A stretch of 64,000 nucleotides of DNA from Macrostomum lignano (lineage: Eukaryota). The stretch lies in contig NIVC01000107.1 of the NCBI GenBank assembly GCA_002269645.1, positions 310,001-374,000 on the forward strand. The letters are read 5' to 3'. The notes beneath the pieces are model-generated. The model searched no databases, was not told where the DNA came from, and saw nothing but the letters and a program-made list of their open reading frames with translations. How positions within the stretch are numbered: the first letter of the stretch is position 1; every line of letters starts with the position of its first letter. The translations under genes were made by a program, and so were the position numbers. Shown in pieces: positions 401 to 61,777 of the stretch.

Positions 401-18186
<17,786 letters not shown>

Positions 18187-25289: not shown

Positions 25290-25692
25290 GTACTGAATAG
25301 TCTATATAGTCTATGTTCTTCACTGAATAGTCTATAGTCTATGGTCTTCACTGAGTAGTCTCTATATAGTCTATGGTCTTCACTGAATAGTCTATAGTCT
25401 ATGGTCTTCACTGAGTAGTCTCTATATAGTCTATGTTCTTCACTGAATAGTCTATAGTCTATGGTCTTCACTGAGTAGTCTCTATATAGTCTATGTTCTT
25501 CACTGAATAGTCTATAGTCTATGGTCTTCACTGAGTAGTCTCTATATAGTCTATGGTCTTCACTGAGTAGTCTCTATATAGTCTATGGTCTTCACTGAAT
25601 AGTCTATAGTCTATGGTCTTCACTGAGTAGTCTCTATATAGTCTATGGTCTTCACTGAATAGTCTATAGTCTATGGTCTAACAGTCTATACC
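25290..25692. repeat. 28-32-bp minisatellite, left arm of an inverted pair
   Basis: Unit gtctatggtcttcactgaatagtctcta(ta), ending in unique ggtctaacagtctatacc. Confidence 0.93.
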
Positions 25693-26619
25693 TATTGACA
25701 AACTCGGCAAATAAAACTTTGTTTAAAAAATTCGTTGCCCACCTCCGCTTGACTAAATTCCTACATGTACATTATTTTGAGAATTGGTGTTGCCAGGGCC
25801 CATTTTATTGCCGCAGGCACTCATTAAATTTAATTTGAATTTCTGAAAACCTTTCTGCCTTTCTGCAGAGGATAAACTATTTTATCCAATGACTCAAGAA
25901 GATTGAGAAAATTCATTAAAGACATAAACAAGCCACTCTGAACTGCCCTGAGGCTCGATTTAAATAAATGAGACAGAAGGAGGTGGTTCTTTGTTATTAA
26001 TATTTTTAAGAACGAGATAATAATGGGCCAAAGGACTGCAACCGTTTGATTGCGGGTGCTTTCTATTTAGCTATAGCTTTTTGATGATGATGGGACATTC
26101 CGGAAGAAAAAATGTTCTAGAAAGAGTAGCGCGGGAATTCAAGTTAACTATATTTAGAATTATTTTTATCGTGGAAATTTCTAGAATGAAATGTTTACTA
26201 CATGGTCAGAAAGTTTGCGAAGGTTCAGTACAAGGTCACTACGGCTTCATTTTGGTACGAGTGTACCGATAATATGATCTGCTTTACGTCGAGAAACTTA
26301 ATTATTTAGTAATTGATGATTAAAGTATAATAGCAATTAAAATTAAAAGTTTAAATTAAAATAAATTTTAAGAAATTAAGATTTTAAAACTAGGATTTTT
26401 CATCAAAAGAATAAGTTAATAACAGTAATAGAATAGCAACAAACACTAATTATTTTTTGTTTTTTTTCCTTCATTGTACTATAGCCTTAAATAACATTTT
26501 TAAATATGAAAATCAGCACCCTCTGCGCAAATTTTTAATAACAATATTTGTTGTTAATATGTACGCTCGTAAGTACGGTTGAATTTTTAAAAGAGCGCTT
26601 CGAATCACTTCGTACTGAC

Positions 26620-29424
26620 CTGCTTGAGGAAATTTTCCAGGCTGAACAAATTCGATTTTTGCAGTGTCCACAGCGTTTGTTCATGCACACTATGCGGCTT
26701 GCGGCAACGATCCATTTTGTGACCAGCATCAGGTGCGATGCAGAGTTGATCCTGCCTGGCATTTGGACGGCAGTCTCGAATTCGAAGCCATTTCGAGTTT
26801 CCCTTCTTGGCCACCAACAGCCAGGACTCCTGGCACTCATGCAGACCAGCGGGCCCGATGTCCTTTTTCAGTGTATAGTGCACCTGATCCTCCGATTCAC
26901 AGCAGTTGTCGCAGCCGAGACGCCAGCAATTGCCTTGCTCGATCATCGATGTTGGAAACCTGGCCTGCGATTGAAAAGTTTTTTCATAATGACCAGAGGT
27001 TTTGGTATAGACTGTTAGACCATAGACTATAGACTATTCAGTGAAGACCATAGACTATAGAGACTATTCAGTAAAGACCATAGACTATATAGAGACTATT
27101 CAGTAAAGACCATAGACTATAGAGACTATTCAGTGAAGACCATAGACTATAGAGACTATTCAGTGAAGACCATAGACTATAGAGACTACTCAGTGAAGAC
27201 CATAGACTATAGAGACTATTCAGTGAAGACCATAGACTATAGAGACTATTCAGTGAAGACCATAGACTATAGAGACTATTCAGTGAAGACCATAGACTAT
27301 AGAGACTATTCAGTGAAGACCATAGACTATATAGAGACTACTCAGTGAAGACCATAGACTATAGAGACTATTCAGTGAAGACCATAGACTATAGAGACTA
27401 TTCAGTGAAGACCATAGACTATAGAGACTATTCAGTGAAGACCATAGACTATAGAGACTATTCAGTGAAGACCATAGACTATAGAGACTATTCAGTGAAG
27501 ACCATAGACTATATAGAGACTATTCAGTGAAGACCATAGACTATAGAGACTATTCAGTGAAGACCATAGACTATAGAGACTATTCAGTGAAGACCATAGA
27601 CTATAGAGACTATTCAGTGAAGACCATAGACTATATAGAGACTATTCAGTGAAGACCATAGACTAAGACCGTGTTAAGTCAATGTCAATCAGACTCCAGA
27701 AAAAATATACCAATATCTCGCATTCTGGACTTCTGTATTGAAAACAAAGCAATTCTGCTTTTTTCGAAATTGATGCACAAGTTTCTTACGCTAAAGCTGT
27801 CAGTCCAGTCAGGTATCATAAATTCTACCAGAGACAAACCGACTAGTTTGAGCAAAGTGAGCGAAGTTCTGGCGATCCCACTATTTTCGTGCGTTCTATA
27901 TACGACCTAAGTTAAGTTGCTGTCCATGCTTTACGAGTGTAAGTACATGTAGTTTGATGCATTTAGCCACGATTTTTAAACGGCTGTTGAATATAATTTA
28001 CAATTTACGAGAAAACTCACAGTTTTATCATTTTCTGGCTTAAGATATTCCTTGATCCAATTTTTGTCCAGTTGATCCAGACCGGCTGCTCCAGATGCTT
28101 CCTCAATTTGTCTTCTTTTGTGCTGGGACACAAAACGTAAGCTCGGTAGCCGCTCAGCTGCCTCCTTCATCCGGCGAATGCCCTCGGCGGGATCTTGGCC
28201 GCTGACCAGGAGAAAGCGGCCGAACTCGAACCGGACGTGAAGCCTCGTCTTGTTGCTGTCTGCAGCAGCCTGCTCTTCGAGGGCTTCGTATCTCTCACGA
28301 AGTTCGACCTTGTCGACAGCTTCTTCATTCTCATTCAGACCCAGCAGCCTCAGCTGGGCCCAGGTGTTTGTTAGATCGACTTTTTGCAGCAAGTATCTGG
28401 CTTTCTGGATTCTGTCCTCGCCAGCATCTTTTGTTTTGATGAAGTACAGAGCGCACTGGAAAGCGAAATCGCTCTTCAGGAACTCGCTATCTGACAGAGT
28501 CTCGCCAGTCTTCAAAACCTTCAGCTCCTTGTTCTTGAGCCTTTTCTTGAGAATTTGGTCCTGGTCTCCTTGGATTGGCACTTTCTTCCACTGCACCATT
28601 TTTGTCAGTCCGCGATAGACTTTGCAGCAGGTGATGTATACATGGAGGTGCTCGCCTGCAAACTGAACCGCCTCATCTGCCAGCTGCTCAGACTTGTTGA
28701 AATGAACAGCGGAGTACGCGAGGGCCTCAGCGAACCGAGCCAGAAACATCGGGTGCTGGACTTTACATTTGTCCAGAATCCTCTTAGCCTCATCCCACAG
28801 CTCCACTCTTTCCTCTCCAATCTCAGCACTGAGGTCCGCCTGACGCCTCTGCATGGCCATCGCCTCTGCCAGACCGAAGCGCCAGTGGAAGCTCTGGACC
28901 GACTGCTCCAGATGGTGCTCCACCTCCAGCTTCAGGGCCTCCCGGAACGCCTTCGCGGCCTCCTCCAGCTGCTGCCTCCCGAAGCTGAGCAGAGTCCAGC
29001 CTTTGGCGCCCCAGACTGAGGCCCGGACCTGCGGCTTCTGCCACTCATCAGAGAGCTTCTGAAGCATCATCTGCTCTTGCTGCTCATCTGGGTGGAATTT
29101 GTTCATCAGGTGCAGCTCCGTGGCCTCGATCAGGAAGGCCACATCCATGGTTAAAGGTGAATTAGCATTCAAATCCAGCTTTGCTTCGTTAAGGTACTTC
29201 AGACACCGTGCTTCATCACCAGGTTGCTCCAGCATGTGCACGTAGACCAGACTCAGCAGGTGCAGCCCCTTTAGTCCGAGCTGGGTGTCCATCCTGCCTT
29301 GCAAGCTGCTGACGAGTCTGTCGATGCTCTCTGGGCTCTCGGCAAGTTTCGGCCTCCACTGGAAGTGACACGGAACCTCGCCCAGGCTCTTGAAAGACTC
29401 CGCTGGATTGTTGAGTTCCGCCAT
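26620..29424 (-). CDS. IFIT5-like TPR protein, predicted fused in frame to a ZC3H7/HELZ2-type zinc-finger exon; 3' end unresolved
   Basis: Exon 29424-28021 (468 codons) has IFIT hallmarks LGEVPCHFQW (cf. CHFTW), KGWTLLSFG...AAKAFREALKLEV and LHVRFEFGRF. Phase-0 donor ACT|gtgagt at 28021 matches phase-0 acceptor cgcag|GCC at 26964. Exon 26964-26620 encodes ...HECQESWLLVAKKGNSKWLRIRDCRP...CRKPHSVHEQTLWTLQKSNLFSLENFLKQ. Candidate last exon 26278-26225. The IFIT part is firm; the fusion is a prediction. Confidence 0.75.
27005..27665. repeat. 28-32-bp minisatellite, right arm, reverse complement of 25290-25692
   Basis: Starts ggtatagactgttagacc (mirror of the left arm inner end), then unit catagactatagagactattcagtgaagac. 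Lies in the predicted IFIT-ZnF intron. Confidence 0.93.
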
Positions 29425-30652
29425 GGCGAGAACTGACTGTCTGAATGAACGGGGGGAGGGGGTAGGGTTGGGATCAGCTCTCAGGCAGCTGTCAGACCAG
29501 AGAGTCGGACTGACATCAGTGGCTCTACAAATGAAAAAAACCGTTAGACCAAGCAAGGAGAACAATTAGTTTTACAAAATTACGAGTAGTAATGTTGGGT
29601 TACTTCCTTAGTACTTAAGCAGTAACCCTGTTGTTATATATAAATGTTGTCTGTTGTCTCTTTCGATTGAAGCTAAAATAAACCTTGATGATGTCCGCTT
29701 TGGACGAAAAGCTTTGGCACGAGCTAATTGCACAACATTTTTCCTAGCTGCTGGTTCTATTTTTGAATCTGACGCTGATCTCAGAAAAATAATAATGGAG
29801 GTTACTAAAAAAAGTCACGTACCGGAGCAGCAGTTGACAGATTTGACCCAATGGCTCACAAGGTACAGCCTACCTGATCGATATTTTAGTTCCATATTTC
29901 TGCTTTAAATAGCTATCCAAATATATACCATATGGTTGAACCTGTTATGAGGGATTTTTAGTGAAGAAAACTAGCAATCAGCGCCCCCTGTTGGGGAGCC
30001 AACATGGTATGGAATAAAAATTATTGAACAAACTACATTTAGCTTCTGACCTCTAAGCCTTGACATTTCAGCAATTCTCCCCAAGAGTCGCAGCATTAGC
30101 AACCTCTCCCCCTCAGGGCTTGACATCTTAGCAATTGATCCCTAATGAACCTTTTGTGTTTGACACTTCAGTCTGTTTGACTCTTCTTTTACGTTAGACA
30201 TGACAAAAAGTTTTCGTTTCACTGGGGACGGTGCAAAGTATGAAGTTAGTGCGTTTCGAGAGAGGTTGGCCCCCTGTTCCACATTTCTGTGGGACCAACA
30301 AATTTAAAGTTAAGAGACGCAGCTTTATAAGCTTCAATGACAACTCTCACAGCAGTCATATTCATATCACAGGAGCACCCACGGGTTCGCTTGTAAATTT
30401 GCAGCTACTGTTCGAAAATGAAAAGAGCAAATTAGCGAGATCACTTACCGAAATACAGATGCTGAGAATGGCTTAGCGACTTTGTAGCACGGCTGGTTTA
30501 TGTGAGTTGGTTTTGCTGGCCATTTAGTTTCAGATACATGTATAATATACAGTGTATACCATGCAGTCATATATGAACATGTACAATAGTTGGAATGGCG
30601 GACCCCCTACGCACTTAAAATCTAATTGGGGCGAGAATGTCAGATACAAATA

Positions 30653-31998
30653 CGAGGTGTATTCAAAAAGTTCTTTTCGGTGCCCTACAAAACTGAACAC
30701 AAAACAACTGGAACTATGAAAACACTGTTAGATTGCTTAACATGATTCGGTCACTCAACATATTCACCGCCAATGTCTTTGCACTTCTGCCAGCGATTTA
30801 CCAGGCCTCTGATTCCGGAACTCACACCACTCGCGTCCGTTTGGCGAACAGCTTGATTGCATGCAGCCTCAATGTGCTCGACGCTGTCGAATCGAATGCC
30901 CCGAAGGTGCTTCTTCACAGATGGAAATAAGAAGAAGTCGCACGGCGACAAATCAGGCGAATAGGCTGGATGTTGGAGCACTTCCCATCCCCATTTGCTC
31001 AGGAGTTCCACGACGTTGTGCTTGCGATGTGCTGGCGCATTGTCGTGCAGCAGGATCACGCCAGATTCCAGCAGATCAGGGCGCTTCTTTCGTATTGCTG
31101 GGCGCAGCTTCTCCTGCAGAATCCACTTGTAGTAGTCCCCATTGACGGTGGTTCCTTGTGGGACTGCCCAGTTCAGCAGGATTCCTTGGGAATCAAAAAA
31201 CATGACGTGCATGATCTTCATCGCGCCCTGCTTCCTGATGGCCTTCTGAGGTCTTGGAGAATGTGCTGGAAGCCATTCGGCAGACTGGGCCTTTGTCTCA
31301 GGATCCCAGCTGTAAACCCACGTCTCGTCTCCAGCTACAATTCTTGATAGAAAATCCTCCCCTTCTCGATGGAACCGACGCAGGTGGCTGCTTGAAGCCA
31401 CAGTTCGCTGCATCTTTTGCTCACCTGTCAGCAGGTGTGGCACCCACTTGCAAAACTTTTTCTGCAGGTGAAGACGCTCCGTCAGAATGGTGTGGACGCT
31501 TCCTACTGACACACCAACGTCTTCTGCCAACTCTTCGCAAGTCCGTCGCCGATCATCATCCAGGAGCTCTTGCACTTTCTTCACAACAGTCTCGTTGGTT
31601 GCAGTCATCGGCCTTCCAGAGCGATCATTGTCCTCAACGCTCTCTCTTCCCTCAGCGAACAGCCGGTACCATTTTCGAACTGTCTGCTCAGTTGGTGCAC
31701 ATTTGCCAAGCACTTGCTGAAGCTCCCTAAACATATCCGGTGGCTTTTTTCCTTGCAGAAACTGAAACTTCATCAAGCTTCGAACGTCTTGCTTTGAAAA
31801 TGATTCAGCCATGGCCAAGAAATTGAGTGGTAGCTGATAGAAATGTTCGCTGCTCTAACATAGTTGCAAACTGAGACTTAAAACCCTAGGAACGTTTAGG
31901 CCATAGACATAACTTGGTGAAATCGCTAAAATTCTGTTTACAAGGCTTTTTAAAAATAAATGCCAAAGGACCGAAAAGAACTTTTTGAATACACCTCT
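30653..31998 (-). mobile_element. Full-length mariner (DD34D) transposon
   Basis: TA|cgaggtgtattcaaaaagttcttttcggt at 30651-30681 and its inverse accgaaaagaactttttgaatacacctc ending 31997. About 1.35 kb, enclosing a transposase ORF. Confidence 0.95.
30751..31812 (-). CDS. Mariner transposase, intact ORF
   Basis: Motifs WVPHLL, GDETW, LHDNAPAH and HPAYSPDLSPCDF, with 34 residues between the second and third Asp. ATG at 31812; no stops or frameshifts. Confidence 0.97.
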   Translation of the reverse strand: MAESFSKQDVRSLMKFQFLQGKKPPDMFRELQQVLGKCAPTEQTVRKWYRLFAEGRESVEDNDRSGRPMTATNETVVKKVQELLDDDRRRTCEELAEDVGVSVGSVHTILTERLHLQKKFCKWVPHLLTGEQKMQRTVASSSHLRRFHREGEDFLSRIVAGDETWVYSWDPETKAQSAEWLPAHSPRPQKAIRKQGAMKIMHVMFFDSQGILLNWAVPQGTTVNGDYYKWILQEKLRPAIRKKRPDLLESGVILLHDNAPAHRKHNVVELLSKWGWEVLQHPAYSPDLSPCDFFLFPSVKKHLRGIRFDSVEHIEAACNQAVRQTDASGVSSGIRGLVNRWQKCKDIGGEYVE

Positions 31999-32824: not shown

Positions 32825-33741
32825 GTCCGTAACTGTACGAGTATGGAGGGCGGGGATCCTTGACAGACGGTTAAAGGATGTCGATATTTCACCAAAAACT
32901 ATGAGCACTGGTTTTCAAGGAATTCAATCTAAGGAATTCAAGCCTGGACATCCAGTCCAAGGAAGCAGCTTCTTAAAGATGTACTTTAGCAGAACAGACA
33001 GCTGCCCCTAAACTAGAATGAGCTGCCTCTAGATCTTCTTCTACGAGCTAGAAGCTGAAGCCGCAACAATAGGCTAGCTTGTGTTCGTGAATTTTGTGTT
33101 TCACCTTTGGGATAGTTCTACAGGTGCAACCGAAGGAACTCGAGCTGTCCGGCTTTGACTTGCGTCCGAGCAGCGTACATACCATACTACTTTTTAATAA
33201 ACCAAACCAATTGAACTAAAAATACAATTGACTGCTGGTCTTATAGAAATGTCATTACCTGATTATTTATTTTTTAAATCAAACCAAATCAACTCGCAGT
33301 ATCAAAAACATTGAATGTTGAAGTCTGTGACAGTAGAAAGCGTGAAAAAACTGCATTAAAATACAGCCTGATATTTGGTAAACGAGTATGAATATAGATG
33401 GATATAGTGCTGCATAATTACTGGTTCTACTCAGAAGCGCTAAGCTGGCTCTAAGAGCGAATGAATAAGACACTAAAAATAGCATCAGCCAGAGTAGGCA
33501 CACAGGAGTTGCAGCATTTATTTCTCATTAGTGATATAGAAAAAGGGAAGCACACATCAGATTGGAAACATGTAGAAGAAAATTTGTGCTAAAATTTACA
33601 CTCAAAATATTTTTATTTTATAACCAATGCTCAAGCTACACTACTCGGGCAAGCAAGTCAGTAGCATCCAACGAGTGCATTAGCCGGGCGGTGGGCACGC
33701 GGGTTAAGCGGAGAACATTTTGGACAGCAATAATGTCAGGC

Positions 33742-34020
33742 AGGGGTCCATAGACACGGACAGGGGGTCAGGTGGGGTCCATAGACACGGACAGGGGGTC
33801 AGGTGGGGTCCATAGACACGGACAGGGGGTCAGGTGGGGTCCATAGACACGGAGAGGGGGTCAGGTGGGATCCATAGACATGGACAGGCGGGGTCAGGTA
33901 GGCTCCATAGACACGGACAGGCGGGGTCAGGTAGGCTCCATAGACACGGACAGGCGAGGTCAGGTAGGCTCCATAGACACGGACAGGCGGGGTCAGGTGG
34001 GGTCCATAGACATGGACAGG
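33742..34020. repeat. 31-33-bp minisatellite whose first unit contains the ZNF stop codon
   Basis: Unit ccatagacacggacaggcggggtcaggtggggt. The terminal unit encodes LSMSMDPT* of the ZNF ORF. Confidence 0.92.
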
Positions 34021-34817
34021 CGGCGCGCGTGGGCCCGCAGGTGGCGCACCAGGTCGCCGGGGCGCTGGAAGCCGCGCGGGCAGATCACGCAGTCGAGTCG
34101 GCGACCGGCGGCGATGGCGTCTTCGTCCTCGTGCGCCCGCCGGTGGCTGTCCAGGTGGCTGCGGCGGGCGAAGCGGTGCTGGCAGAGGTCACACTGGAAC
34201 GGCCGCTCGTTGGCGTGCAGGCGGCGGTGGCTCAGCAGGGAGCCGCTCTGGGCGAAGCTGCGGCCGCACTGGGCGCAGGCGAAGGGCCGCTCGCCAGAGT
34301 GCGTGCGGCGGTGGCGGGACAGGTCGGTGTTGCGCGGGAACTGCCGGCCGCACTGGTCGCAGCTGAACGGGCGCTCGTCGGTGTGCCGGGCCCGCAGATG
34401 GCTGCGCAGGTTGCTGAGGCGGGCGAAGCTGGACGGGCACTGCTCGCAGCTGAAGGGCCGCTCGCCGCTGTGCACCCGCATGTGGCTGCTGAGGTGGCTC
34501 CGCTGGCCGAAGGCGAGGCCGCAGTCGCCGCAGCGGTGCGGTTTCGCGTGGCTCCGCCGATGCCGAGACAGCTGGCGGAGCTCCGGGAAGCGGCGCGGAC
34601 AGTCCGGACAGCTGAACTGCTCGGCCGCGGCGGCCTCCATGGCGTCAGGCGGCTGGCGCTGGTCGGGCGCGGACTGCCGATCCTCAGTGTGCGGCGGCTG
34701 CTGCTGCAAGTCGGGCATGGCGGGGCGGGGGTCAGAGACCAGCTGCTCAGCCGCGGTGTGCATATATTGGGGCCGGCAGCGGCTCACATGCCGGCTCACT
34801 GTGTGGCAATGCGCCAT
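33993..34817 (-). CDS. C2H2 zinc-finger protein, 7 fingers
   Basis: Seven CxxC...HxxxH units with HSGERPF-type linkers in the 274-aa ORF. The true start codon is uncertain. Confidence 0.9.
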   Translation of the reverse strand: MAHCHTVSRHVSRCRPQYMHTAAEQLVSDPRPAMPDLQQQPPHTEDRQSAPDQRQPPDAMEAAAAEQFSCPDCPRRFPELRQLSRHRRSHAKPHRCGDCGLAFGQRSHLSSHMRVHSGERPFSCEQCPSSFARLSNLRSHLRARHTDERPFSCDQCGRQFPRNTDLSRHRRTHSGERPFACAQCGRSFAQSGSLLSHRRLHANERPFQCDLCQHRFARRSHLDSHRRAHEDEDAIAAGRRLDCVICPRGFQRPGDLVRHLRAHARRLSMSMDPT

Positions 34818-48995: not shown

Positions 48996-51025
48996 TTTTA
49001 GTATTCAGCCTTTTTACTTTGGCATCTCTGATCAAAATCCCGAGTCCACCGCAATCCCAAGATAAAAGAATAAAGAGACAGCGCCAAGAGGAACTGAAGG
49101 AGGCAGCCAAGAGATCCAGAAAATTACTGGTCTTGCCCTGGCAATTTTCATTCATTTTGATATGAATTAAGTTGATATGAGCTGTCGGTTGCACATCTGC
49201 CTATTGGTGTAGGTGTAATCAATTGTTATTATTACGCACAGAGCATTGAGATTACAGATAGAAACAGCCCGAGGACAGAGTCCAATAAATTTACGCTCGT
49301 ACACAGATCGAGCGTAACAGTTATATCGATGAATTTTCGATGCATTGATATAAGCAAGCCGAAACTCCAAAGTCGGATTATATATGAGTGCCAAAATTTT
49401 GACTGAGGCACGAGGCTGTGGCAGTGTCAAAGACCGAAAAAATGAGGCAGCTTTAGACAGAATTTTAACAGGCTCATTAAGGATAGGTAGCCAAAAAGTA
49501 CAGCACTCCTTTCAATTTCTGAAGCAGCAAATTGTCATTGCATGGGCCAGTAGCTAGGTTTATTTGCGTTTTCTGTCTCAACTAATGTAATGGAAATTTA
49601 ATCCATAGGGTCGAACGCGACGAGACGACATTTGTTTTTCGCTTGGTCTTCGGTTTTTGATTTAAGAATTTTTCTATGAATGTCACGTCGTAGGGTATGG
49701 TAGGCTGTAGCTAGCTAGGCTTGCAAAAAGCAAATCCAATGAAAGCTAGAACTAGTAGCTGTCGGCTGGCCGGTTCCAGTTCAGTTGCTGCGTTGCATTT
49801 ATCATTCATGAGAGGACGTGTATGCGACCCGTGTTCCAACTCCAACACAGGCTCTTCAAGATGCCTGAGCTAAGTAACCCTAACCCTAACTAAAGTTATG
49901 TTATGATAGATGATAAGGCCTATCAAGTTTTTTATTTTGCATTTGCTTTTTCGCTCTTTCGCTTGAAAGCTGCGAGTGGTATAATAAAATTTATACCTAC
50001 CTAGACTAGAGAATTCTTTGTATTGTAGACATAGGCCTACCTTAAAAATAGCCTAACCTAAGTAGATTTTTAACTTTTTTGATAGGGGCCTAATGATAAT
50101 TTTGAATTTTATAATGTAATAAGTGCTTTAAAATTCAAGTTTCATTGTTTTATTTACTAAATTGAACCAAAATATTCATTCAATAGGCTAGGGCTCATCC
50201 CTATGTATGTATAGGCCTATATATAGGGCCTAGGCCTATGTATAGTTTTAATACTATGTGAATTAGGGCTAGGCTAATTTGGGCCTTCTATCCAACTAGA
50301 CCACAAATCAATATTGTAATTTTTGGAAAATTGGCTAATTGCTTATTTTGTAACTTTTTTATATTAATTTTATAATTTTATTTTGGCAATTCTTATTTTT
50401 TCCATGTTTAATTCTTTAAAGTTTAATAATTTTTAATTCAATTAAGTACAAAATTATATAGGCTATAAAAATTTGAGAGAAACAAAGGAAAGCTTCTATA
50501 ACTGGTCAATGAATATAAAAAAAGAAAATAAGCTATAAATAGTTTAAAGCCAGAGAAAAAAATTTAAATTGTACATAATGCAAAACTATATTGCAAGAAA
50601 GCTCCAAATATAAACTATGTCCACTTTTTCATTAAAGGTATGCACTTTTACATGCACCTGTGATTGTGTGTGTATGTGTGTAATAGTGATAGCCCATAAT
50701 TCATGGGTTTTGTACTTTGAGGCAGTGTGGTCAAATGAATACAATGCGAGAAGTGATTGCAGAGAAGAAAAAGTCACAAAGGCTTGGAAGGCCAGTGCGC
50801 ACTTATATATTTTACTTAAACAAACTACTAACCAGCATGATTCAGCAAACACCAAACTCTCCACCCGGCCTAGGCTGGTCTAGGCAGACAGAAAAACCCC
50901 CTAGCCAATCAGAACGCAAGAACACTAACTAGCATACAAGCTGTATACACAACAATGGGGTCTCAATTGTGACAGCCCAGGCATCCAAATCTTGCATTTC
51001 TTCCACCCACTGCATTTCTCTCCAG

Positions 51026-54000
51026 TCAACGCCAAGAAGTCAGGCTGCTCAGCAGCCGGAAGGCGCCCCAGGCCAGCTGCAGCAGCTGTCCTATCCCTAC
51101 CTCAATCTGTTCAAGGAGCTGGGCGTTGGCCAATGGAACAGGTCAGAGTGCCATGGCGGGGTGGCCTCCTACATGGACCAGACTGTCAAGTCAACTGCCT
51201 TCAGCATCCAGGGCGCGGTGTCCGCCTCCAACTACATCCAGCTGCCCAGGCCTGCTGGCCGCGGCCTGCAGCTGCAGTGCCGCTACCTGTACGTGCAGTT
51301 CCGGCCCAGCCCCGGCCGCCACTTCGTGCTGCACGTGGACCTGGCAGCGGCCGGCACCACCGCCCCGGTGCGGCTCAGCGTCAGCAGCCTCTACAAGCGG
51401 CCTGCCGGCGGCGCCGCTGCCATCAAGCTGCCGTTCGTCTTCGACGCCGACGGCCGAGGCCGCCTGCTGGCCGCGCCGCCGGACGAGTCCGAGGCGCCGG
51501 CGGCCGGGGCGCCCTGCCCGGAGGCGGCCCGCTGGACTCTGCTGCGTCTCGACCTGGACTGGGCGCTGCGGGTGTTCGCCGGGGTTCGCCTCGGCTGCCT
51601 GCGCGGCCTTCGGCTCTGCGCCTGCATGAGCGCTCGCGCCGTCTTTGCCGCCTCCAGGCGCTACCAGCCGAACGCATCGCCCGTCTCCGAGGAGGCGCTG
51701 CCCCGCGCCATGGCCTTCTTCCTGGGCCGCGGCGAGCGCTTTGAAGATCGCTACGATTTTGTGCAGCTACCCGAGCCCACAGTCGAAGCTCGCGAGGCCG
51801 CGCCTCCTGTCGGGCCGGCTGAGCGAAGACCCTCGCCGCCGCCTGCGCCGCTGACGCCGCCGCCGCCTCAACAGCCGCAGTCGTCCTTCGTCAGGCCGGC
51901 TGCTTCTGTGCCGGCGTCAGCAGCGGCGGAGCTGCGCCTGTCGCGGGTGCTGGGCTGCACACAGCCGCACAGCGCCTGCTGGACCCAGGAGGAGCTGGTC
52001 TTCCCCTGCCACGCCCTGGTGGTGGCCCAGTGCCTGGCCACCGGCCGCCAACGCTTCTTCACCGGCCACACGGACTCCGTTGGCTGCGTGGCCGTGGACT
52101 CCGCCTGCGGCCGGATGGCCAGCGGCCAGCGCGGCCTGCTCCGCCTGTGGGACTTCGCCGGCCAGCGCTGCCTGGCCCACTGTCCGGCCTTTCAGCTGGG
52201 CGCCGGCCTTCTGGCCTTCTCGCCCGGCGGCCTTCGGTTGGCCGGCACCGGCCGGGACGCTCACGGACGCTTTGTGGTCACCGTCTGGCAGGTGAGCCGG
52301 GGCTGGCGTGCTGGGATTTGAATCAAGATAGGATGGGATTTGAGTCATGATTGGATGGGATTTGGGCCTGGGATGTGGAATCTGGTGGATAATTTTCCCC
52401 ACATCTGCGACCCCCAGACGGACGGGCCGGTCGTCCGGCTGCTCGCCAAGGCCTGCAGCGACCAGGCCCCCGTTGCCCTGCACTTCCTGGACGAGGCGCG
52501 CGTAGTCACCTGCGGCCGCGGCGCCGTCCGCTTCTGGCGTGTCAAAGGCGGCGGCGGCGCCGCCGGAACCTCGGCGCTGCTCCGCTCGGCGCCGGCCGCC
52601 CTGGGCGAGTACGCGGCGCTGGACTTCACCGCCGTCTGCCCGCTGCCCGGGCCTGCCGACGCTGACCCGCTGGTGCTGGCTTGCGCCCGGTCCGGCCACG
52701 TGCTCGAGCTCGGCGCCTCCGACCTGGCCGTCCGGCGCGCCCGCCGCCTGCTGCCGTCGGACCGGACAGCCTGGCGTGGCCGAGCTCGGCCGGCCGGCAT
52801 CGAGGTGTCCGCGGTGGCGGCCAACGAGTCCTTCTGCGTGACGGGCTCGGCCGATGGCTTCCTGCGCGTCTGGCCGCTCGACTTCTCGCAGGTGGGTCTT
52901 CGACTCGAGGTCCCTCACTTGAAGCTCGTTTTATCTCTGTGTTTGACCCTGGGACTAATTTGTGCGGGCTGATTTGGAAATGAACTGGTGCACCGCCTCT
53001 TGCAGGGAAGTCTAGTTATAATGTATTGAAATTTCCTCTTATCTTGAAATTGACCAAAAATTACACCTGACTGAATTACACTTGACTGTAGCTGACCAAA
53101 TCATACCTGACCAAATTACACCTGACCAAATTACACCTGACCAAATTACACCTGACCAAATTACACCTGACCAAATTACACCTGACCAATTTACACCTGA
53201 CCAAATTACACCTGACCAAATAGCACCTGACCAAATTACACATGACCAAATTACACCTGACCAAATTACACCTGACCAAATTACACCTGACCAAATTACA
53301 CCTGACCAAATTACACCTGACCAAATTACACCTGACTGAATTACACTTGACTGTAGCTGACCAAATTACACCTGACCAAATTACACCTGACCAAATTACA
53401 CCTGACCAAATTACACCTGACCAAATTACACCTGACCAAATTACACCTGACCAAATTACACCTGACCAAATTACACCTGACCAAAAAGCACCTGACCAAT
53501 TTACACCTGACCAATTTACACCTGACCAATTTACACCTGACCAAATTATACCTGACCAAATTACACCTGACCAAATAGCACCTGACCGAATTACACCTGA
53601 CTGATATTACCCCCCAAACCTTACCTTATAAAATTCCCCGCTCGCCCAGGTGCTCCTCGAGGCCGAGCACGAGAGCCCGGTGGTGACCGCCGCTCTCAGT
53701 CGGGACGGCGCCAGCGCCCTGGCCGCCACCGCCGCCGGCTGCCTCGGAGTCCTGGACGTTGCCCGCCGCGCCTACCGGACACTCGTCCGCTCGCCCGGCC
53801 CCGGCCCGGTTGCCTCCGCCCATCTCGGCCGGGACACCCTGGCCACGGTGTCCGCCGGCGACAAGTCGCTCCGCCTGTGGAGCTCCGACCGCCTCGACCA
53901 GTGCCAGAGCTTCGGCCTCGCTGAGCCGCCCTGCCGCGTCGCTGTTCACCCCCGCGACGGCCTCGCCGCTTGCGGCTTCCGCTCCGGCCACGTCCGCTTG

Positions 54001-57000
54001 TTCGACCTGGCCGCCGCTTCCATGCTGGGTGAGCGGCGCAGCCATAGCGGCGCCGTCAGCGGGCTCGCCTTCTCCGCCTGCGGCCTCCGCCTGTTCTCCT
54101 GCGGCTCCGACGGCGGCCTGTCGGTTCACGACGCCTCGGCGGCCTGCGCGCTGCTCCGCTCCGTGCCCGACGTTGTCGCCAGGGTCGGCGCCGGCGGCTC
54201 CGAGGACCGTCCGAGCCCGCTGGCCGTGGACTCGGCCGACCCCGGCGGCTCCCTCATTGCCTACATCGGGCCGACCGGCGCCGCGGTTGTCGTGGCCGAA
54301 GGCGCCACCCTCGCTGAGCTGATCCGCGTAGACGTCACCATGGTCGCCGGGGCGGGCGTGGCGGACGCAGCCCGCGCCCTGCAGTTCGGCGCCGGGCACC
54401 TCCTGGTGGCCACGGAGGGCGGCCGCCTACTTCGATTGGAGCGCCGTTCCGGCCGCCTGGCCTCCCAGCTGTCCGACCTCGGCCGCTGCGACTGCCTCTG
54501 CCTGAGCCCGGACGGCCGTTACTGCGTGGCCGGGGTTGGCCGGCAGCTGAAGCTGTTCCAGAACTGCTCGACCGGACAGGTGCAGTTCTCCAGCTTCCTG
54601 GGCCACAGCGGCCGAATCTGCGCGCTCGCCTTTAGCGCCGACGGCGCCAGACTGATGTCCGTTGGGGAGGCGGTCCTCGTCTGGGACTTCATGGCCCCGC
54701 CGGCATCTGAGAAGCCTGCCGAGAACCTCAGGACTGAGAACGGCGCCAAGGTTTGTGGACAGTGAAACCAGCCCCACCTGACTCCCAATGTACATCAGCC
54801 TCCCCACCTCACTCCCAATGTACATCAGCCTCCCCACCTCACTCTCAATGTACATCAGCCTCCCCATCAACTCTTTGAGAAGTTTTCCATTTAATCCTTG
54901 TAGAAGCCTCAACCAACACCCGTCACGCCGGCCGCTCCGCAGTCGCGACACCGAGTGGAGGCGCCGGTGCGCGACCCCGGCCCGGGCCCGGCCACCGGGA
55001 CGGCGAACCCGGAGCTCGCCGATGCCGTGCCGCTTGCGAACGACGGCAGCAGCTCCAGCTCCAGTGTGTCCGACTGCGAAGTCACGGAGCTCGCCGCGCC
55101 GGCCTCCAGCGCCCCGCCTGCCGAGCCGACGGTGTCGCTGCCGGTGCCGCCGCTGGCGCTGTTGCCCGACGAGCCGGCGGCGGGAGACGACGGCGGCGCT
55201 CCGCACGAGCATCCGGCGCCTTCATCTGCGCGCCACTTTCGGTCCGGCGCCGAGTCGTTGCGACAGCCGCCTGCCGACCAGCGGCGCTACCTGGCGCGGC
55301 CCGGCGAGGAGGCGCTGAGGCTGCGCGCCGGACTCGGTGCCGGCTCGGGCGTCGGCGCCATCGCCTGGCTGGAGGGCCGCGGCCGTCTGGTGTACGCCGT
55401 CGGCTGCCAGCTGCTGTCCGAGGACCTCGAGACCGGCCTGCAGGCGCGGCTCTGCCAGCTGCCCGGCCCGGCCACCGCGGCCGCCGCCAGCTCCGACAGC
55501 CGCCTGGCCGCCTTTTGCTGCCTCGGCGGCGGTCTGCGCATTTTCGACGCCGAGGCTGCCGACGCTGCGAACGCCGAGGCGCCGGAGGGAGTGTCGATGG
55601 CGCTGATCTGCCGCCCGCTGTCCGGCGGCCCGGCCACCTGCGCGCAGTTCAGCAGAGACGATCGCTACCTGCTGACCGTGGGCAACCACGCCGATCCCCT
55701 GCTGCAGGTCTGGCTGGGTCCCGACTGGCAGGCCGTGGCCAGCCACCGGGCGGCCTACCCCGTCAACGACGTCTGCTGGCGCGCCGCCGACCTCGCCAGT
55801 TTCGTCAGCGTCGGCACCGCGGCCGCCCTCTCCGTCTGGTCGGTGGTTAGCGGGCCGGACGGATCGCAGCGGCTGCAGCTGGAGGAGCTGCCCGCGCCGG
55901 ACGAGGCCATCGGACGGCGGCCCGGACTGCGGGCGTCGGCTGCCTCAGCCGAGGAGCTGTCGGCTTGCACCGTCGACTCTGACGACGCCGCGTTTGTGGC
56001 CGGTGGCCGCGGCCGGGTCTCCGTGTGGTCGCTGGGCGAGCGCCGCTGCGTCATGCACTGGGAGGCCGAGGCCAACGAGGTGTGTCGGCTGGCCCTGCGG
56101 CCCGGCGGCCTCCTCCTGTGCGGAGCCGCTGACGGCGCCGTCAAGGCGTGGGACGTGCGCGACATCCTTGGCCTGGGCGGCGGCGGCTGGTCGGGCGGCC
56201 GCGTCCGGCTGGTCAGCTCCGCCCGACTGGATGGCGCCGTGCTGGCGCTGCTGCCGGACAGCCAGGCCGAGCTGGCGCTGGCCGCCACCGCTGCTTCCGT
56301 GTGGTGCCTCCGAGTTGCCGAGGGCGCCGCCACCCGCCTGATCGCCGGCCACGCCGCCCGCGTCGCCGCCGCGGCGCCGTTGCCCGGCCTCGGCGTCCTG
56401 GCCACCGGCGACGCGTCGGGCGCTGTCCGAATCTTCGACTCGGCCGGACGGCAGCTCCTGTGCCAGCTGCAGCCCGGCCGCCTCTCGGCCGCCTGCCTCT
56501 GCCTGGCCGCGGACGCCCTCTACTTGGCGGCCGGCTACGGGGACGGCCACGTCCGGGCCTTCACGGCCGGCGCCGACCTCGGCCAGACTTTGAAGGCCCG
56601 CCCGCACGCGGCCGGCGTGTCCTCGCTGGCTTTGGACCCCGGCCACCGTTTCCTGGTCAGCGGCTGCTCCGACGGCCTGCTGGCGCTGACGGGTCTCGAC
56701 ACCGGCCTCGTGCTGCGCGTCCTCCGCGACCACCGCGGCTCCGGCGTCGCCTGCCTGGACATCCAGCCGGACTCCGGCGGCTGCCACTTCCTGGCCTCCG
56801 CGGCCGACCGCCGCCTCAGCCTCTGGGCCTGCGCCGACTCCGCCGACTCCGTCGACCTCCGCCTGTGGCTGGCCTTCCCCCTGCCGGCCTTCGCCCCAGG
56901 CAGCGGCCGCCCGCTGTCTGACGATCCGACGGCCGCCATGGAGCTGCCGCCGGCGCTGGCCCGCTTCTGCCCGGCCGACGCCGACCTGCTGCTGCTGACC

Positions 57001-57300
57001 GGCTGCGCCCAGCAACCGGCCGTGGACCTCTACAGCCTCGCCCAGCGCCGAGTCGTCCGCTCCGTGTCGCTGCCCCGCTGGCCGCACTGCCTGGACGCGT
57101 CTCCGTCCGGCCGCCTGCTGCTGCTGGGGTCGCTCGGCCGCCTTGTCACCCTGCTGGACCTCGGCAGCGGCTGCTTCCAGGACTTCGTTGGACACGCGGA
57201 GGGCCTGTCCTGTGTCCGGTTCGGCGAAGATGGACGGTCCTGCTGGACTGCGGCAGGGAGAGACGTCCTGGGCTGGGATGTGCTGATCAGGGACTGCTGA
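51026..57300 (+). CDS. WDR90: WD repeat-containing protein 90 (CFAP20/DUF667-like N-domain plus WD40 propellers); first exon unresolved
   Basis: Exons ~51026-52291, 52418-52891, 53650-54750, 54904-57300, all phase 0, GT-AG. Motifs YPYLNLFK...GAVSASNYIQLP...RYLYVQFRP, DFSQ|VLLEAEHE and QDFVGHAEGLSCVRF...VLGWDV match WDR90. A candidate start exon is ATGCCTGAGCTAA|gt at 49861. Confidence 0.9.
53060..53605. repeat. 15-bp minisatellite, WDR90 intron
   Basis: Unit aaattacacctgacc. Confidence 0.97.
54776..54870. repeat. 30-bp repeat x3, WDR90 last intron
   Basis: Unit aatgtacatcagcctccccacctcactccc. Confidence 0.85.
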
Positions 57301-58963: not shown

Positions 58964-60829
58964 ATGAAGCTTAAATCGAAGCTGCAACTCTGCTCGGCCC
59001 CGACAGCATCCGGAGACGGCAGCCCTGAGCTGGCGATGCAGACGGCCGATGGCACCCGGCTGGGGCAGCTGATGCAGCTGCCGTGCATGCAGAAGTACCT
59101 GGCCAGCTTCCAGCCCGACGCTGTCGCCGAGATTCAGCGGCACATCGACAATCGTCTCAAGCGGTCGACGCCTACGACGACAGCCGCACCGTCGCCGCAT
59201 CAGCCGCCGTTCCGTCTGCCGACCTACGCCGAGTACGTCCGCATGGTGCAGTCGCAGCAGGACCTGCGCCCCCAAGTTCGCGTTGTTGACAGTGAGAGCC
59301 GGCAGCTGCGGCACAACCACAGCGACACCGGCGGCTGCCAGCTGAGCGGCCAACGCCGTCGGCTATACGACGACGAGCGACTGCAGACGGTGTCGGAGCT
59401 ACTCGCTTCCGAGGAGCGGTTCAGCAGCGACCTCCGCCTGCTGCACACCGAGTTCCGCAGGCCGCTGCTGGCCAGCCGCCTCCTCAGCGCCGAGGACGTT
59501 GCGGACGTCTTCGTCAACCTGCCGCAGCTGCTGCGGGCTCAGGTCTCCCTGCTGGACCGCCTTCGACTGGCCGTCTCTGCAGCCGTCGCCGCCGGAGATG
59601 CCGACCAGGCCGCTGCCGGCGTAGCCGACGCCTTCCTGGACGGCGCCACCGACCACCTCACCTGCCTGCGGCACTACAGCGTCGGGCACCGGCGCTCGCT
59701 GGCCCGCCTTGACCGCCTGGAGCGGCGCTGCCGCCTGCTGCGCCTCTTCCTGGCGGCCTCCCAAGACGACAACCCGCGCCTGCGCCGGATGCCTCTGCGC
59801 GCCTTCCTCATCCAGCCCGTGCAGCGGCTCATGCGGTACCCCCTGCTGCTCGACCGCCTGCTGCGGCTCAGCAGCTGCGGCGGCGGCGGCGGCGGCGGCG
59901 GAAAGCTCGACTTTGCCAGCTCGACGGTCGAGCGGCTGCGCCGGGCGAAGTCGCAAGTCGAGGCCGCCATTGCCGAGACCAACGCCCGCGCCCTTGAGCC
60001 GTCCGACGCGCAACCCCAGCAGCCGCCGCAGCCGCAGGCGCCGTCGCCTCCTCCGCGGCAGCTGCTCACCTCTGCCTCTTCGAACTCGCTCTCGGCCATC
60101 GGCTGTCTGCGCCACTTCGCCGGCCCAACGAGGAAGGCGACGCCGCTGACAACAGCCGCCGCTGCGGTCGAATGGGCGGCTGCCAGCCGGCAGCGCAGCG
60201 CCTCCTGCAGCGGCGCCGACCTGGTACGCCTCGCGCTTGACCGCCTGCGCTGGGGCACCGCAGCCCGCTGTTGCTTCAGCGGCGCGGTCTACGCGGCCCC
60301 GACCGCCACGGCCGACCTTCGCAGCGGCTGCTGGGCGGTGCTGATCTCTCGAAATCTGCCAGAGGACGCCGGGGCTGCCGAGTCTGGCGCGAAGAAGCTT
60401 TCAGCGCTGCTGTTTCCTGGAACTCTGGACCGCGAAGCCGCAGCGGTCGCAGCTGAAGTGGGCGACGATGAGCCGGAGGCGGCGCTGCTGCTGTTCCAGG
60501 AGCCGCGGCTCGGCAGGCGGGCGCTGCTGCGGGAGCCGCTGCTGCTCAGCGCCTGCGTTGTCGGCGAAAGCAGCGACGACTTCAGCGTCCGCGTCTCGGA
60601 CGTCCGCGGCGGCAGCGGCGTCGCCCGCCTGCGGCCCGCGGTTGACTCGCCAGCGGCTGCCCTGCGTCTCCAGCGACTTCTGCGCCGTGTCAGCCTGCGC
60701 TGCGGCCGCTGGCGCCTGCGGAGGCCGGCGGCGCCCAACGCCCTCCTGGCTGGACTGGTCGGCAGCTCGAGCCCCCCACCCACGTCTGTGGCGTCCGGAC
60801 ACTCCTGGCTGGAAGAAGCGGAGCGTTGA
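58964..60829 (+). CDS. Dbl-homology RhoGEF, single coding exon, 621 aa, degenerate PH-like C-terminus
   Basis: DH motifs TVSELLASEERFSSDL, DVFVNLPQLL and LRAFLIQPVQRLMRYPLLL. Subfamily not assignable by eye. Confidence 0.88.
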   Translation: MKLKSKLQLCSAPTASGDGSPELAMQTADGTRLGQLMQLPCMQKYLASFQPDAVAEIQRHIDNRLKRSTPTTTAAPSPHQPPFRLPTYAEYVRMVQSQQDLRPQVRVVDSESRQLRHNHSDTGGCQLSGQRRRLYDDERLQTVSELLASEERFSSDLRLLHTEFRRPLLASRLLSAEDVADVFVNLPQLLRAQVSLLDRLRLAVSAAVAAGDADQAAAGVADAFLDGATDHLTCLRHYSVGHRRSLARLDRLERRCRLLRLFLAASQDDNPRLRRMPLRAFLIQPVQRLMRYPLLLDRLLRLSSCGGGGGGGGKLDFASSTVERLRRAKSQVEAAIAETNARALEPSDAQPQQPPQPQAPSPPPRQLLTSASSNSLSAIGCLRHFAGPTRKATPLTTAAAAVEWAAASRQRSASCSGADLVRLALDRLRWGTAARCCFSGAVYAAPTATADLRSGCWAVLISRNLPEDAGAAESGAKKLSALLFPGTLDREAAAVAAEVGDDEPEAALLLFQEPRLGRRALLREPLLLSACVVGESSDDFSVRVSDVRGGSGVARLRPAVDSPAAALRLQRLLRRVSLRCGRWRLRRPAAPNALLAGLVGSSSPPPTSVASGHSWLEEAER

Positions 60830-60841
60830 TTGTCCGTTGAA

Positions 60842-61313
60842 ATCAAGGATCTGGGATCAAGGATCTGGGATCAAGGATCTGGGATCAAGGATCTGGGATC
60901 AAGGATCTGGGATCAAGGATCTGGGATCAAGGATCTGGGATCAAGGATCTGGGATCAAGGATCTGGGATCAAGGATCTGGGATCAAGGATCTGGGATCAA
61001 GGATCTGGGATCAAGGATCTGGGATCAAGGATCTGGGATCAAGGATCTGGGATCAAGGATCTGGGATCAAGGATCTGGGATCAAGGATCTGGGATCAAGG
61101 ATCTGGGATCAAGGATCTGGGATCAAGGATCTGGGATCAAGGATCTGGGATCAAGGATCTGGGATCAAGGATCTGGGATCAAGGATCTGGGATCAAGGAT
61201 CTGGGATCAAGGATCTGGGATCAAGGATCTGGGATCAAGGATCTGGGATCAAGGATCTGGGATCAAGGATCTGGGATCAAGGATCTGGGATCAAGGATCT
61301 GGGATCAAGGATC
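60842..61313. repeat. Perfect 14-bp minisatellite starting 13 nt after the RhoGEF stop
   Basis: (atcaaggatctggg)n, about 33 identical copies. Confidence 0.99.
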
Positions 61314-61777
61314 TTAATACTATGCATAATTTACTTCTTGCACAACTCGCTTTGCGTGACACGAACGCCACTTTTATTGCAAGACTCAGTAGTATTAGCG
61401 TTTTTTCAGTTACTGAAATAAACATTTACAAATGATGCTTAAATATAATATAACCTTATCATGCACTGTAGACTATGCAGTGTACATAAATATGTGCAAA
61501 TTTTAATCGCCACCTTCAGTACGAGGTGCTGCCCTTCAAGACGCTGCCTGGCGCAACAAGCAACAAAATAAACAGCAATAGTGCTGAGTAGACGAGTAGC
61601 TAGTTGAGATGACTAAACAGTTAGCCTATCTTATTAAGAGTGCTGTCCTTAAATTACACAATGGCAGCATTCGATACTTGAGTAATTGTCATGACCAGGC
61701 TTTATCAGGGTACTGCGCTCGTGTTTCCACAAAAATCGGAAAAGGGGTCAACTTAACTCAAAAATCTTCCAACATAA

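Follow-up and report, generated by a model that had tools for sequence, protein, structure and literature searches.

We analysed a 64,000-nt stretch of the genome of the flatworm Macrostomum lignano (hereafter the window; part of contig NIVC01000107.1, assembly Mlig_3_7, GCA_002269645.1), and all coordinates are positions in this window unless stated. Our findings make it probable that the minus strand at 27976..29424 carries an intact, single-exon gene encoding a 482-residue, all-helical solenoid of the tetratricopeptide repeat (TPR) type, which shares ancestry with IFITs along most of its length and is a member of a divergent invertebrate family. Standard accounts treat IFITs as effectors of interferon. 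They have been described as occurring only in jawed vertebrates, having arisen together with interferon, and as absent from invertebrates (Liu et al. 2013, PMC3688568); interferon genes are likewise present in jawed vertebrates and were not found in the invertebrate genomes examined (PMC3688568). We searched the literature for IFIT homologues of invertebrates or flatworms without finding any report, and we conclude that the invertebrate IFIT-like lineage is real and previously undescribed, and that it looks new for invertebrates. An earlier note on this DNA had proposed an IFIT5-like protein of an interferon-independent lineage in an invertebrate. The host is indeed an invertebrate, and independence from interferon holds in that interferon of the vertebrate kind cannot drive a lineage that lies outside jawed vertebrates.

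Kinship with IFITs in sequence and predicted fold

The open reading frame (ORF) extends from 29565 to 27976 on the minus strand and counts 529 codons from stop to stop; computed from the local base composition, the chance of so many codons without a stop is ~3e-13. Its first ATG, at 29424, has a strong start context (G at -3, G at +4) and no in-frame ATG upstream, and the complete coding sequence, recognized from the ORF list, the translation and the IFIT homology, comprises 482 codons plus a TAA stop without introns. The earlier note had rightly seen an uninterrupted frame at this place; its count of 468 codons was slightly short and the strand was left unstated. Homologues also start 10-25 residues ahead of their own LECHFxW motif. 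All the motifs on which the note had relied, PCHFQW, KGWTLLSFG, AAKAFREALKLEV and HVRFEFGRF, are present in the translation. The first (residues 18-23; 29356..29373, minus strand, as are all motifs of this gene) is the counterpart of CHFTW (C18 H19 F20 T21 W22), invariant across the vertebrate IFIT alignment; in the CHFQW of the flatworm protein (residues 19-23) Thr is replaced by Gln, and the C, H, F and W that are invariant in the 17 aligned vertebrate sequences are retained. Residues 141-168 (28921..29004), comprising KGWTLLSFG (141-149) and AAKAFREALKLEV (156-168), align with IFIT5 EKGWALLKFGGKYYQKAKAAFEKALEVE: W143 is kept and Ser147 occupies the position of K150. Further on, KVYR (residues 268-271; 28612..28623) aligns with IFIT5 K257-F-Y-R260, R271 representing the retained RNA-contact residue R260, and shortly before this motif R253 and Y254 have given way to I264 and T265. 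HVRFEFGRF (residues 396-404; 28213..28239) aligns with IFIT5 H-YHYGRF (379-385), and an LGRF-type motif occurs also in long flatworm paralogues. Finally, a basic patch, HKRR (residues 435-438; 28111..28122), falls in a predicted C-terminal helix and may correspond to the IFIT5 basic helix K415-K426, near which it lies with the register not conserved.

Searches beyond these motifs point in the same direction. A phmmer (HMMER) scan of 1.84 billion cluster representatives, with a cut-off of E <= 1e-3, returned 20 matches, 15 of them members of an invertebrate family and 5 vertebrate proteins. The vertebrate matches (E 1.2e-7 to 4.5e-5 against the whole library) come from two frogs, a stingray and milkfish, annotated as IFIT5-like or IFIT1-like, and from the electric eel, whose unnamed protein KAK1793859.1 scores 611 bits against the vertebrate IFIT profile. 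In the reverse search, a profile of 17 vertebrate IFITs gave the window protein 36.6 bits over residues 12-170, which places it among the three family members closest to IFITs. Against the sequences of the PDB, the family profile matched IFIT5 (1.5e-9, aligned over 13-313), IFIT2 (5.8e-8), IFIT1 (3e-7) and then IFIT3, all above every natural TPR protein, the best natural non-IFIT match being Prp6 (4e-3). In hhalign, the family aligned with vertebrate IFITs across 340 columns that span IFIT5 residues 11-386 (probability 99.05%, E 2e-18), and local alignment carries the match on to the GRF motif (window protein 380-404, IFIT5 363-385). A word-indexed homologue search, the index being too insensitive here, returned nothing with the protein and a single protein with the family alignment.

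The predicted fold agrees. An AlphaFold2 model built on a 26-row alignment, five rows of which are vertebrate IFITs, is all-helical, with a pLDDT (predicted local distance difference test) of 83.2 and a predicted template modelling (TM) score of 0.80; a single-sequence model (pLDDT 44) was unusable. In Foldseek against the PDB the top seven matches are all IFIT1, IFIT5, IFIT2 or IFIT2-IFIT3 (E 1.3e-6 to 2.7e-4). The IFIT1, IFIT5 and IFIT2 structures reach query TM scores of 0.50-0.58 over ~500 columns, the IFIT2-IFIT3 entry 0.29. OGT comes next (E 7e-4, TM 0.38), and other TPR proteins reach TM <= 0.43. Against viral structures Foldseek gave nothing at E <= 1e-3, so nothing suggests viral capture.

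Such a likeness could in principle come from convergence or from the common TPR consensus, the protein being a generic TPR scaffold of no specific IFIT ancestry. Cross-matching is common among TPR proteins in profile comparisons, the best invertebrate and cyclostome BLAST matches to IFITs were earlier found to be unrelated TPR proteins (Liu et al. 2013, PMC3688568), and designed consensus TPRs, matched over a single repeat, make up the remaining PDB matches of the family profile. We nevertheless regard this explanation as highly improbable: landmarks outside the repeats recur in the same order, CHFxW preceding the first repeat, then KGW...FG, then GRF towards the C-terminus; no other TPR family appeared at the cut-off among the 1.84 billion representatives; natural non-IFIT TPR proteins in the PDB fall at least five orders of magnitude behind in the profile search and reach a lower TM in the fold comparison; and Pfam TPR models are barely matched. 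Homology to IFITs, rather than mere generic TPR similarity, is well supported. On this the earlier note was borne out, as HMMER, the family profile, hhalign and Foldseek all favour IFITs and, among solved structures, IFIT5 is nearest in sequence. Orthology to IFIT5 specifically was rejected, the protein being closer to a separate flatworm-type family than to any vertebrate IFIT; because it groups there, the "IFIT5-like" of the note cannot mean orthology.

The putative ligand pocket

The IFIT5 residues whose mutation alters RNA binding are listed in Table 5 of PMC9677429. K150, R253 and R186 are the strongest electrostatic contributors, and affinity falls 15-fold in the K150M mutant and ~150-fold in Q41E/K150M/R253M (PMC9677429). 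We mapped 17 IFIT5 RNA-contact positions through the hhalign alignment, with the IFIT5 numbering checked against published residue numbers. All three main contributors are lost (K150 to S147, R186 to M191, R253 to I264), as are Y156 (L153), Y250 (H261), Y254 (T265), H287 (F322) and F337 (N353), and R307 has no counterpart. R260 (R271), Q288 (Q323), L291 (L326) and D334 (D350) are kept, E33 and F339 have similar residues (D35, a conservative change, and W355, conservatively aromatic), and T37 (G43) and Q41 (T47) are not kept, in a helix of uncertain register. K257, outside the Table 5 list and given for context only, is kept as K268. By ungapped extension, K415 and K426 fall on Q434 and G445, with HKRR (435-438) close by. 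The mapping of tunnel residues proposed in the earlier note thus came out divided, with the main contacts gone and R260, Q288, L291 and D334 retained. By this alignment the basic triphosphate- and RNA-binding tunnel of IFIT1/IFIT5-type sensors is poorly conserved in the window protein, and the IFIT5-type tunnel function implied by that note finds no backing at K150, R186 and R253, nor at the five aromatic or histidine positions replaced along with them.

These results bear on the most attractive functional alternative, namely that the protein is a working sensor of the IFIT5 or IFIT1 type, with a basic tunnel that clamps RNA ending in a 5'-triphosphate (5'-ppp) or an incompletely methylated cap, and acting as an interferon-independent antiviral effector tuned to trans-spliced host mRNAs with trimethylguanosine (TMG) caps. 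The protein is collinear with IFIT5 over its full length and of equal length (482 residues), it retains W143 (the Trp of the IFIT "GW"), R271, Q323, L326, D350 and W355 as well as a basic C-terminal helix, and of the 15 other family members 13 have Arg or Lys at the R186 position and about half have a basic residue at the R253 and R260 positions, the K150 position being mostly Cys. M. lignano also trans-splices ~30% of its genes with a 35-nt leader (PMC8629364). The spliced-leader trans-splicing on which the earlier note had speculated is documented for this species; the TMG cap is only inferred from other taxa (PMC8629364). In the short leader region of the gene itself (29425..29470, minus strand), a polypyrimidine tract runs ahead of CAG acceptors that lie 10-20 nt upstream of the ATG. 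This region agrees in 5 of 6 positions with [T/C]TNCAG, the motif of M. lignano trans-splicing (motif from PMC8629364), and might be a candidate cis- or spliced-leader acceptor. Against a working sensor stand the replaced tunnel contacts, an isoelectric point (pI) of 6.3 with net negative charge, and a scan of the 1.2 kb upstream of the gene for the core of the interferon-stimulated response element (ISRE), which gave one isolated, uninformative GAAANNGAAA match at 30414-30423 and hence no enrichment. The window copy is unusually poor in IFIT5 contacts, yet it is the sole family member to keep an IFIT-type "KGW". Overall, we consider a working sensor unlikely. Judged from the alignment, the replacement of the main tunnel contacts leaves 5'-ppp/cap0 sensing of the IFIT5 type unsupported for this copy.

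Returning to the reading we favour, an IFIT relative of divergent pocket chemistry, the protein would probably act, like IFITs, as a cytoplasmic clamp or scaffold that grips a ligand in the groove between its helical subdomains. Because the residues at the K150, R186 and R253 positions are non-basic, it most likely would not clamp 5'-triphosphate RNA in the IFIT5 manner. IFIT3 partners IFIT1. A comparable role as partner or modulator of RNA-binding paralogues, or else the binding of a different ligand, would be more plausible for the flatworm protein.

An invertebrate family and the state of the gene

The 15 invertebrate family matches share the consensus LECHFxWxPE, IKGxT..CFG and F.WLWG.AF...R..R, and the window protein keeps L104, W128 and A163, positions invariant throughout the family. 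The sole named members are four M. lignano hypothetical proteins (PAA92423.1, PAA80017.1, PAA70660.1 and PAA70671.1); PAA92423.1 and PAA70660.1 are the ones named among the 20 matches. Other members lie on long-read ENA contigs (ERZ25074608, ERZ26859043, ERZ25069296), where their neighbours are animal, namely a Cys-loop receptor and retroelements; the family therefore occurs in at least one other invertebrate. These ENA relatives are single long ORFs with AT-rich coding sequence, on contigs with coverage of 84-96x and 3x. Closest to the window protein are M. lignano PAA92423.1 (BOX15_Mlig030191g2, 1062 aa) and PAA70671.1 (1091 aa) together with the ENA relatives (E 1e-13 to 1e-9), with an identity of 27-30% over the first 230-275 residues. 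Like the window protein, the long paralogues carry LECHFxW, xKGxT, LW and GRF and are nearly intron-free, and the M. lignano ones are annotated in the genome. They differ in being about twice as long, in having mostly Arg at the R186 position, and in an extra conserved C-terminal domain of ~290 residues. In the long flatworm-type proteins (860-1,090 aa) this domain shows invariant R-E-H-x-I, W...W and Y..AH.AAEFAE. It has no match in Pfam and no sequence match in the PDB, and no trace of it was seen in the window gene, its flanking DNA or the rest of the window. It may be an output or effector module joined to an IFIT-like clamp. The 64-kb window holds no second IFIT-like gene; the paralogues sit on other contigs.

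Taken further, these observations allow a broader and decidedly tentative proposal, which we rate as rather unlikely. The IFIT fold would be older than jawed vertebrates, and flatworms and some other invertebrates would keep their own IFIT-like family, in part fused to a novel C-terminal, putative effector domain, for interferon-independent surveillance of RNA 5' ends in hosts whose own mRNAs have two cap types (7-methylguanosine, m7G, and the TMG of the spliced leader); within this family the window gene would represent a short form, of IFIT size, whose ligand pocket has been remodelled. If the similarity of a flatworm family to IFITs is specific in both sequence and fold, the IFIT scaffold would have originated earlier than the interferon system or apart from it. 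M. lignano, with a sequenced genome and documented trans-splicing, would be a tractable model for the original role of this scaffold, and the uncharacterised C-terminal domain of the long paralogues may reveal how such a clamp couples to an output. A caution applies to the window copy: it is an IFIT relative with a different pocket chemistry, to which vertebrate IFIT function is not transferable by name.

Several points weigh against our reading of the gene. With vertebrate IFITs the protein shares ~16-27% identity, and the direct matches are significant over no more than the first ~170 residues. A Pfam scan of the protein found no significant domain (TPR_2 E 0.17), and the protein alone gave a single weak match against PDB sequences, IFIT5 at E 0.21, through CHF(Q/T)W and KGW(T/A)LL(S/K)FG. 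The IFIT rows in the model alignment possibly pulled the model toward the IFIT fold, and TM scores of 0.55-0.58 to IFITs are moderate. The residue mapping past about residue 300 rests on a weak alignment, and other basic residues (R150, R193, R194, K268, R271 and K436-R438) might form a positive groove. Finally, the Mlig_3_7 record NIVC01000107.1 calls no gene over the ORF, in the listed stretch only a zinc-finger gene and a transposase being called, and the GC content at third codon positions (GC3) is 0.65, compared with 0.84-0.92 in the clathrin, zinc-finger, WDR90 and RhoGEF coding stretches. Given the missing annotation and the lower GC3, expression of the gene is unproven; weak expression or a different evolutionary past could account for the lower GC3.

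The last two points also suit the idea of an unexpressed or decaying paralogue whose frame is still open but disused. The gene is uncalled in an annotation that uses RNA-seq evidence (PMC8629364), though its paralogues are annotated; no identical or at least 50%-identical protein was found in a 15-billion-protein collection, and an exact look-up of the product was also empty, which agrees with the ORF being uncalled in the GenBank record; several family-conserved basic residues are gone; and a mariner element and minisatellites flank the gene. Decay is difficult to reconcile with 482 intact codons (the ~3e-13 given above refers to the 529-codon ORF) at ~25-29% identity to the nearest paralogues, from which long-term maintenance of the frame is implied, or with the good start context, the retention of L104, W128 and A163, and the confidently folded model. 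We therefore judge a decaying copy quite improbable and retain the intact gene as the better description.

Window 27751-34812 matches NIVC01000107.1:337751-344812 with 100% identity over 7,062 bp. Contamination or foreign origin was rejected: the contig is M. lignano DNA of 392 kb, and the gene has clathrin heavy-chain exons (5973-16864, plus strand) on one side and WDR90/POC16 (50969-57300, plus strand) on the other. A RhoGEF gene follows at 58964-60829 (plus strand). The zinc-finger gene (33993-34817, minus strand), of the C2H2 type and with five fingers, has an open frame of 274 codons, from which GenBank calls a 228-aa product starting at a later ATG; an exact look-up of the 274-aa product found it not on record, and a 33-bp minisatellite (33735-34023) overlaps the 3' end of this gene. 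The IFIT-like gene itself is flanked on one side by a 30-bp minisatellite array (27017-27665), which starts ~310 bp downstream of its stop codon and has a related array at 25292-25695, and on the other by a 1,347-bp DNA transposon of the mariner/Mos1 type (30651-31997, minus strand), ~1.2 kb upstream. The transposase ORF (30751-31812, 353 aa, HTH_48 and Transposase_1) has no breaks and is found identical on four contigs of GCA_002269645.1, and at least three further copies in the assembly share 99.8-99.9% identity with the element. The window is very dense in minisatellites, with 37 Tandem Repeats Finder rows scoring at least 200 (e.g. 7729-8262, 15041-16103, 16870-17769 and 60842-61314); many occupy apparent gaps between clathrin heavy-chain exons and give rise to long spurious ORFs in GC-rich stretches. 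An Rfam scan of the window returned nothing.

Comparison with known systems

Generic TPR superhelices, such as the TPR domain of OGT, LGN/Pins and Prp6, are likewise built of all-alpha helical-hairpin repeats, but they score much more weakly (Foldseek E >= 7e-4 and TM <= 0.43; profile E >= 4e-3) and are without the CHFxW and GRF landmarks. Human IFIT1 (PDB 5W5H, 5W5I, 5UDI), a binder of cap0 and 5'-ppp mRNA, is the top Foldseek match (E 1.3e-6, TM 0.55/0.61). Its "GW" tryptophan, which we take to stack on the cap, is kept in the window protein as W143; by sequence IFIT1 is a weaker match than IFIT5, and basic tunnel residues common to the two are missing in the flatworm protein. Human IFIT5 (PDB 3ZGQ, 4HOQ, 4HOR), a monomeric clamp of 5'-ppp RNA, shares ~16-20% identity with the window protein, in which the equivalents of K150, R186, R253, Y156, Y250, Y254, H287 and F337 are replaced and the R307 loop is absent. 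Unlike IFIT5, the flatworm gene has its start codon in the main exon, no interferon system or ISRE context, and a location outside any IFIT cluster. In other respects the two agree: among PDB entries IFIT5 scores highest by sequence and ranks near the top by fold (TM 0.56-0.58), it too is 482 residues long, and the two proteins are collinear through CHF(T/Q)W, KGW(A/T)LL(K/S)FG, AFxxALxxE, GRF and a basic C-terminal helix. As in the window gene, most of the IFIT5 coding sequence lies in one exon (PMC3688568).

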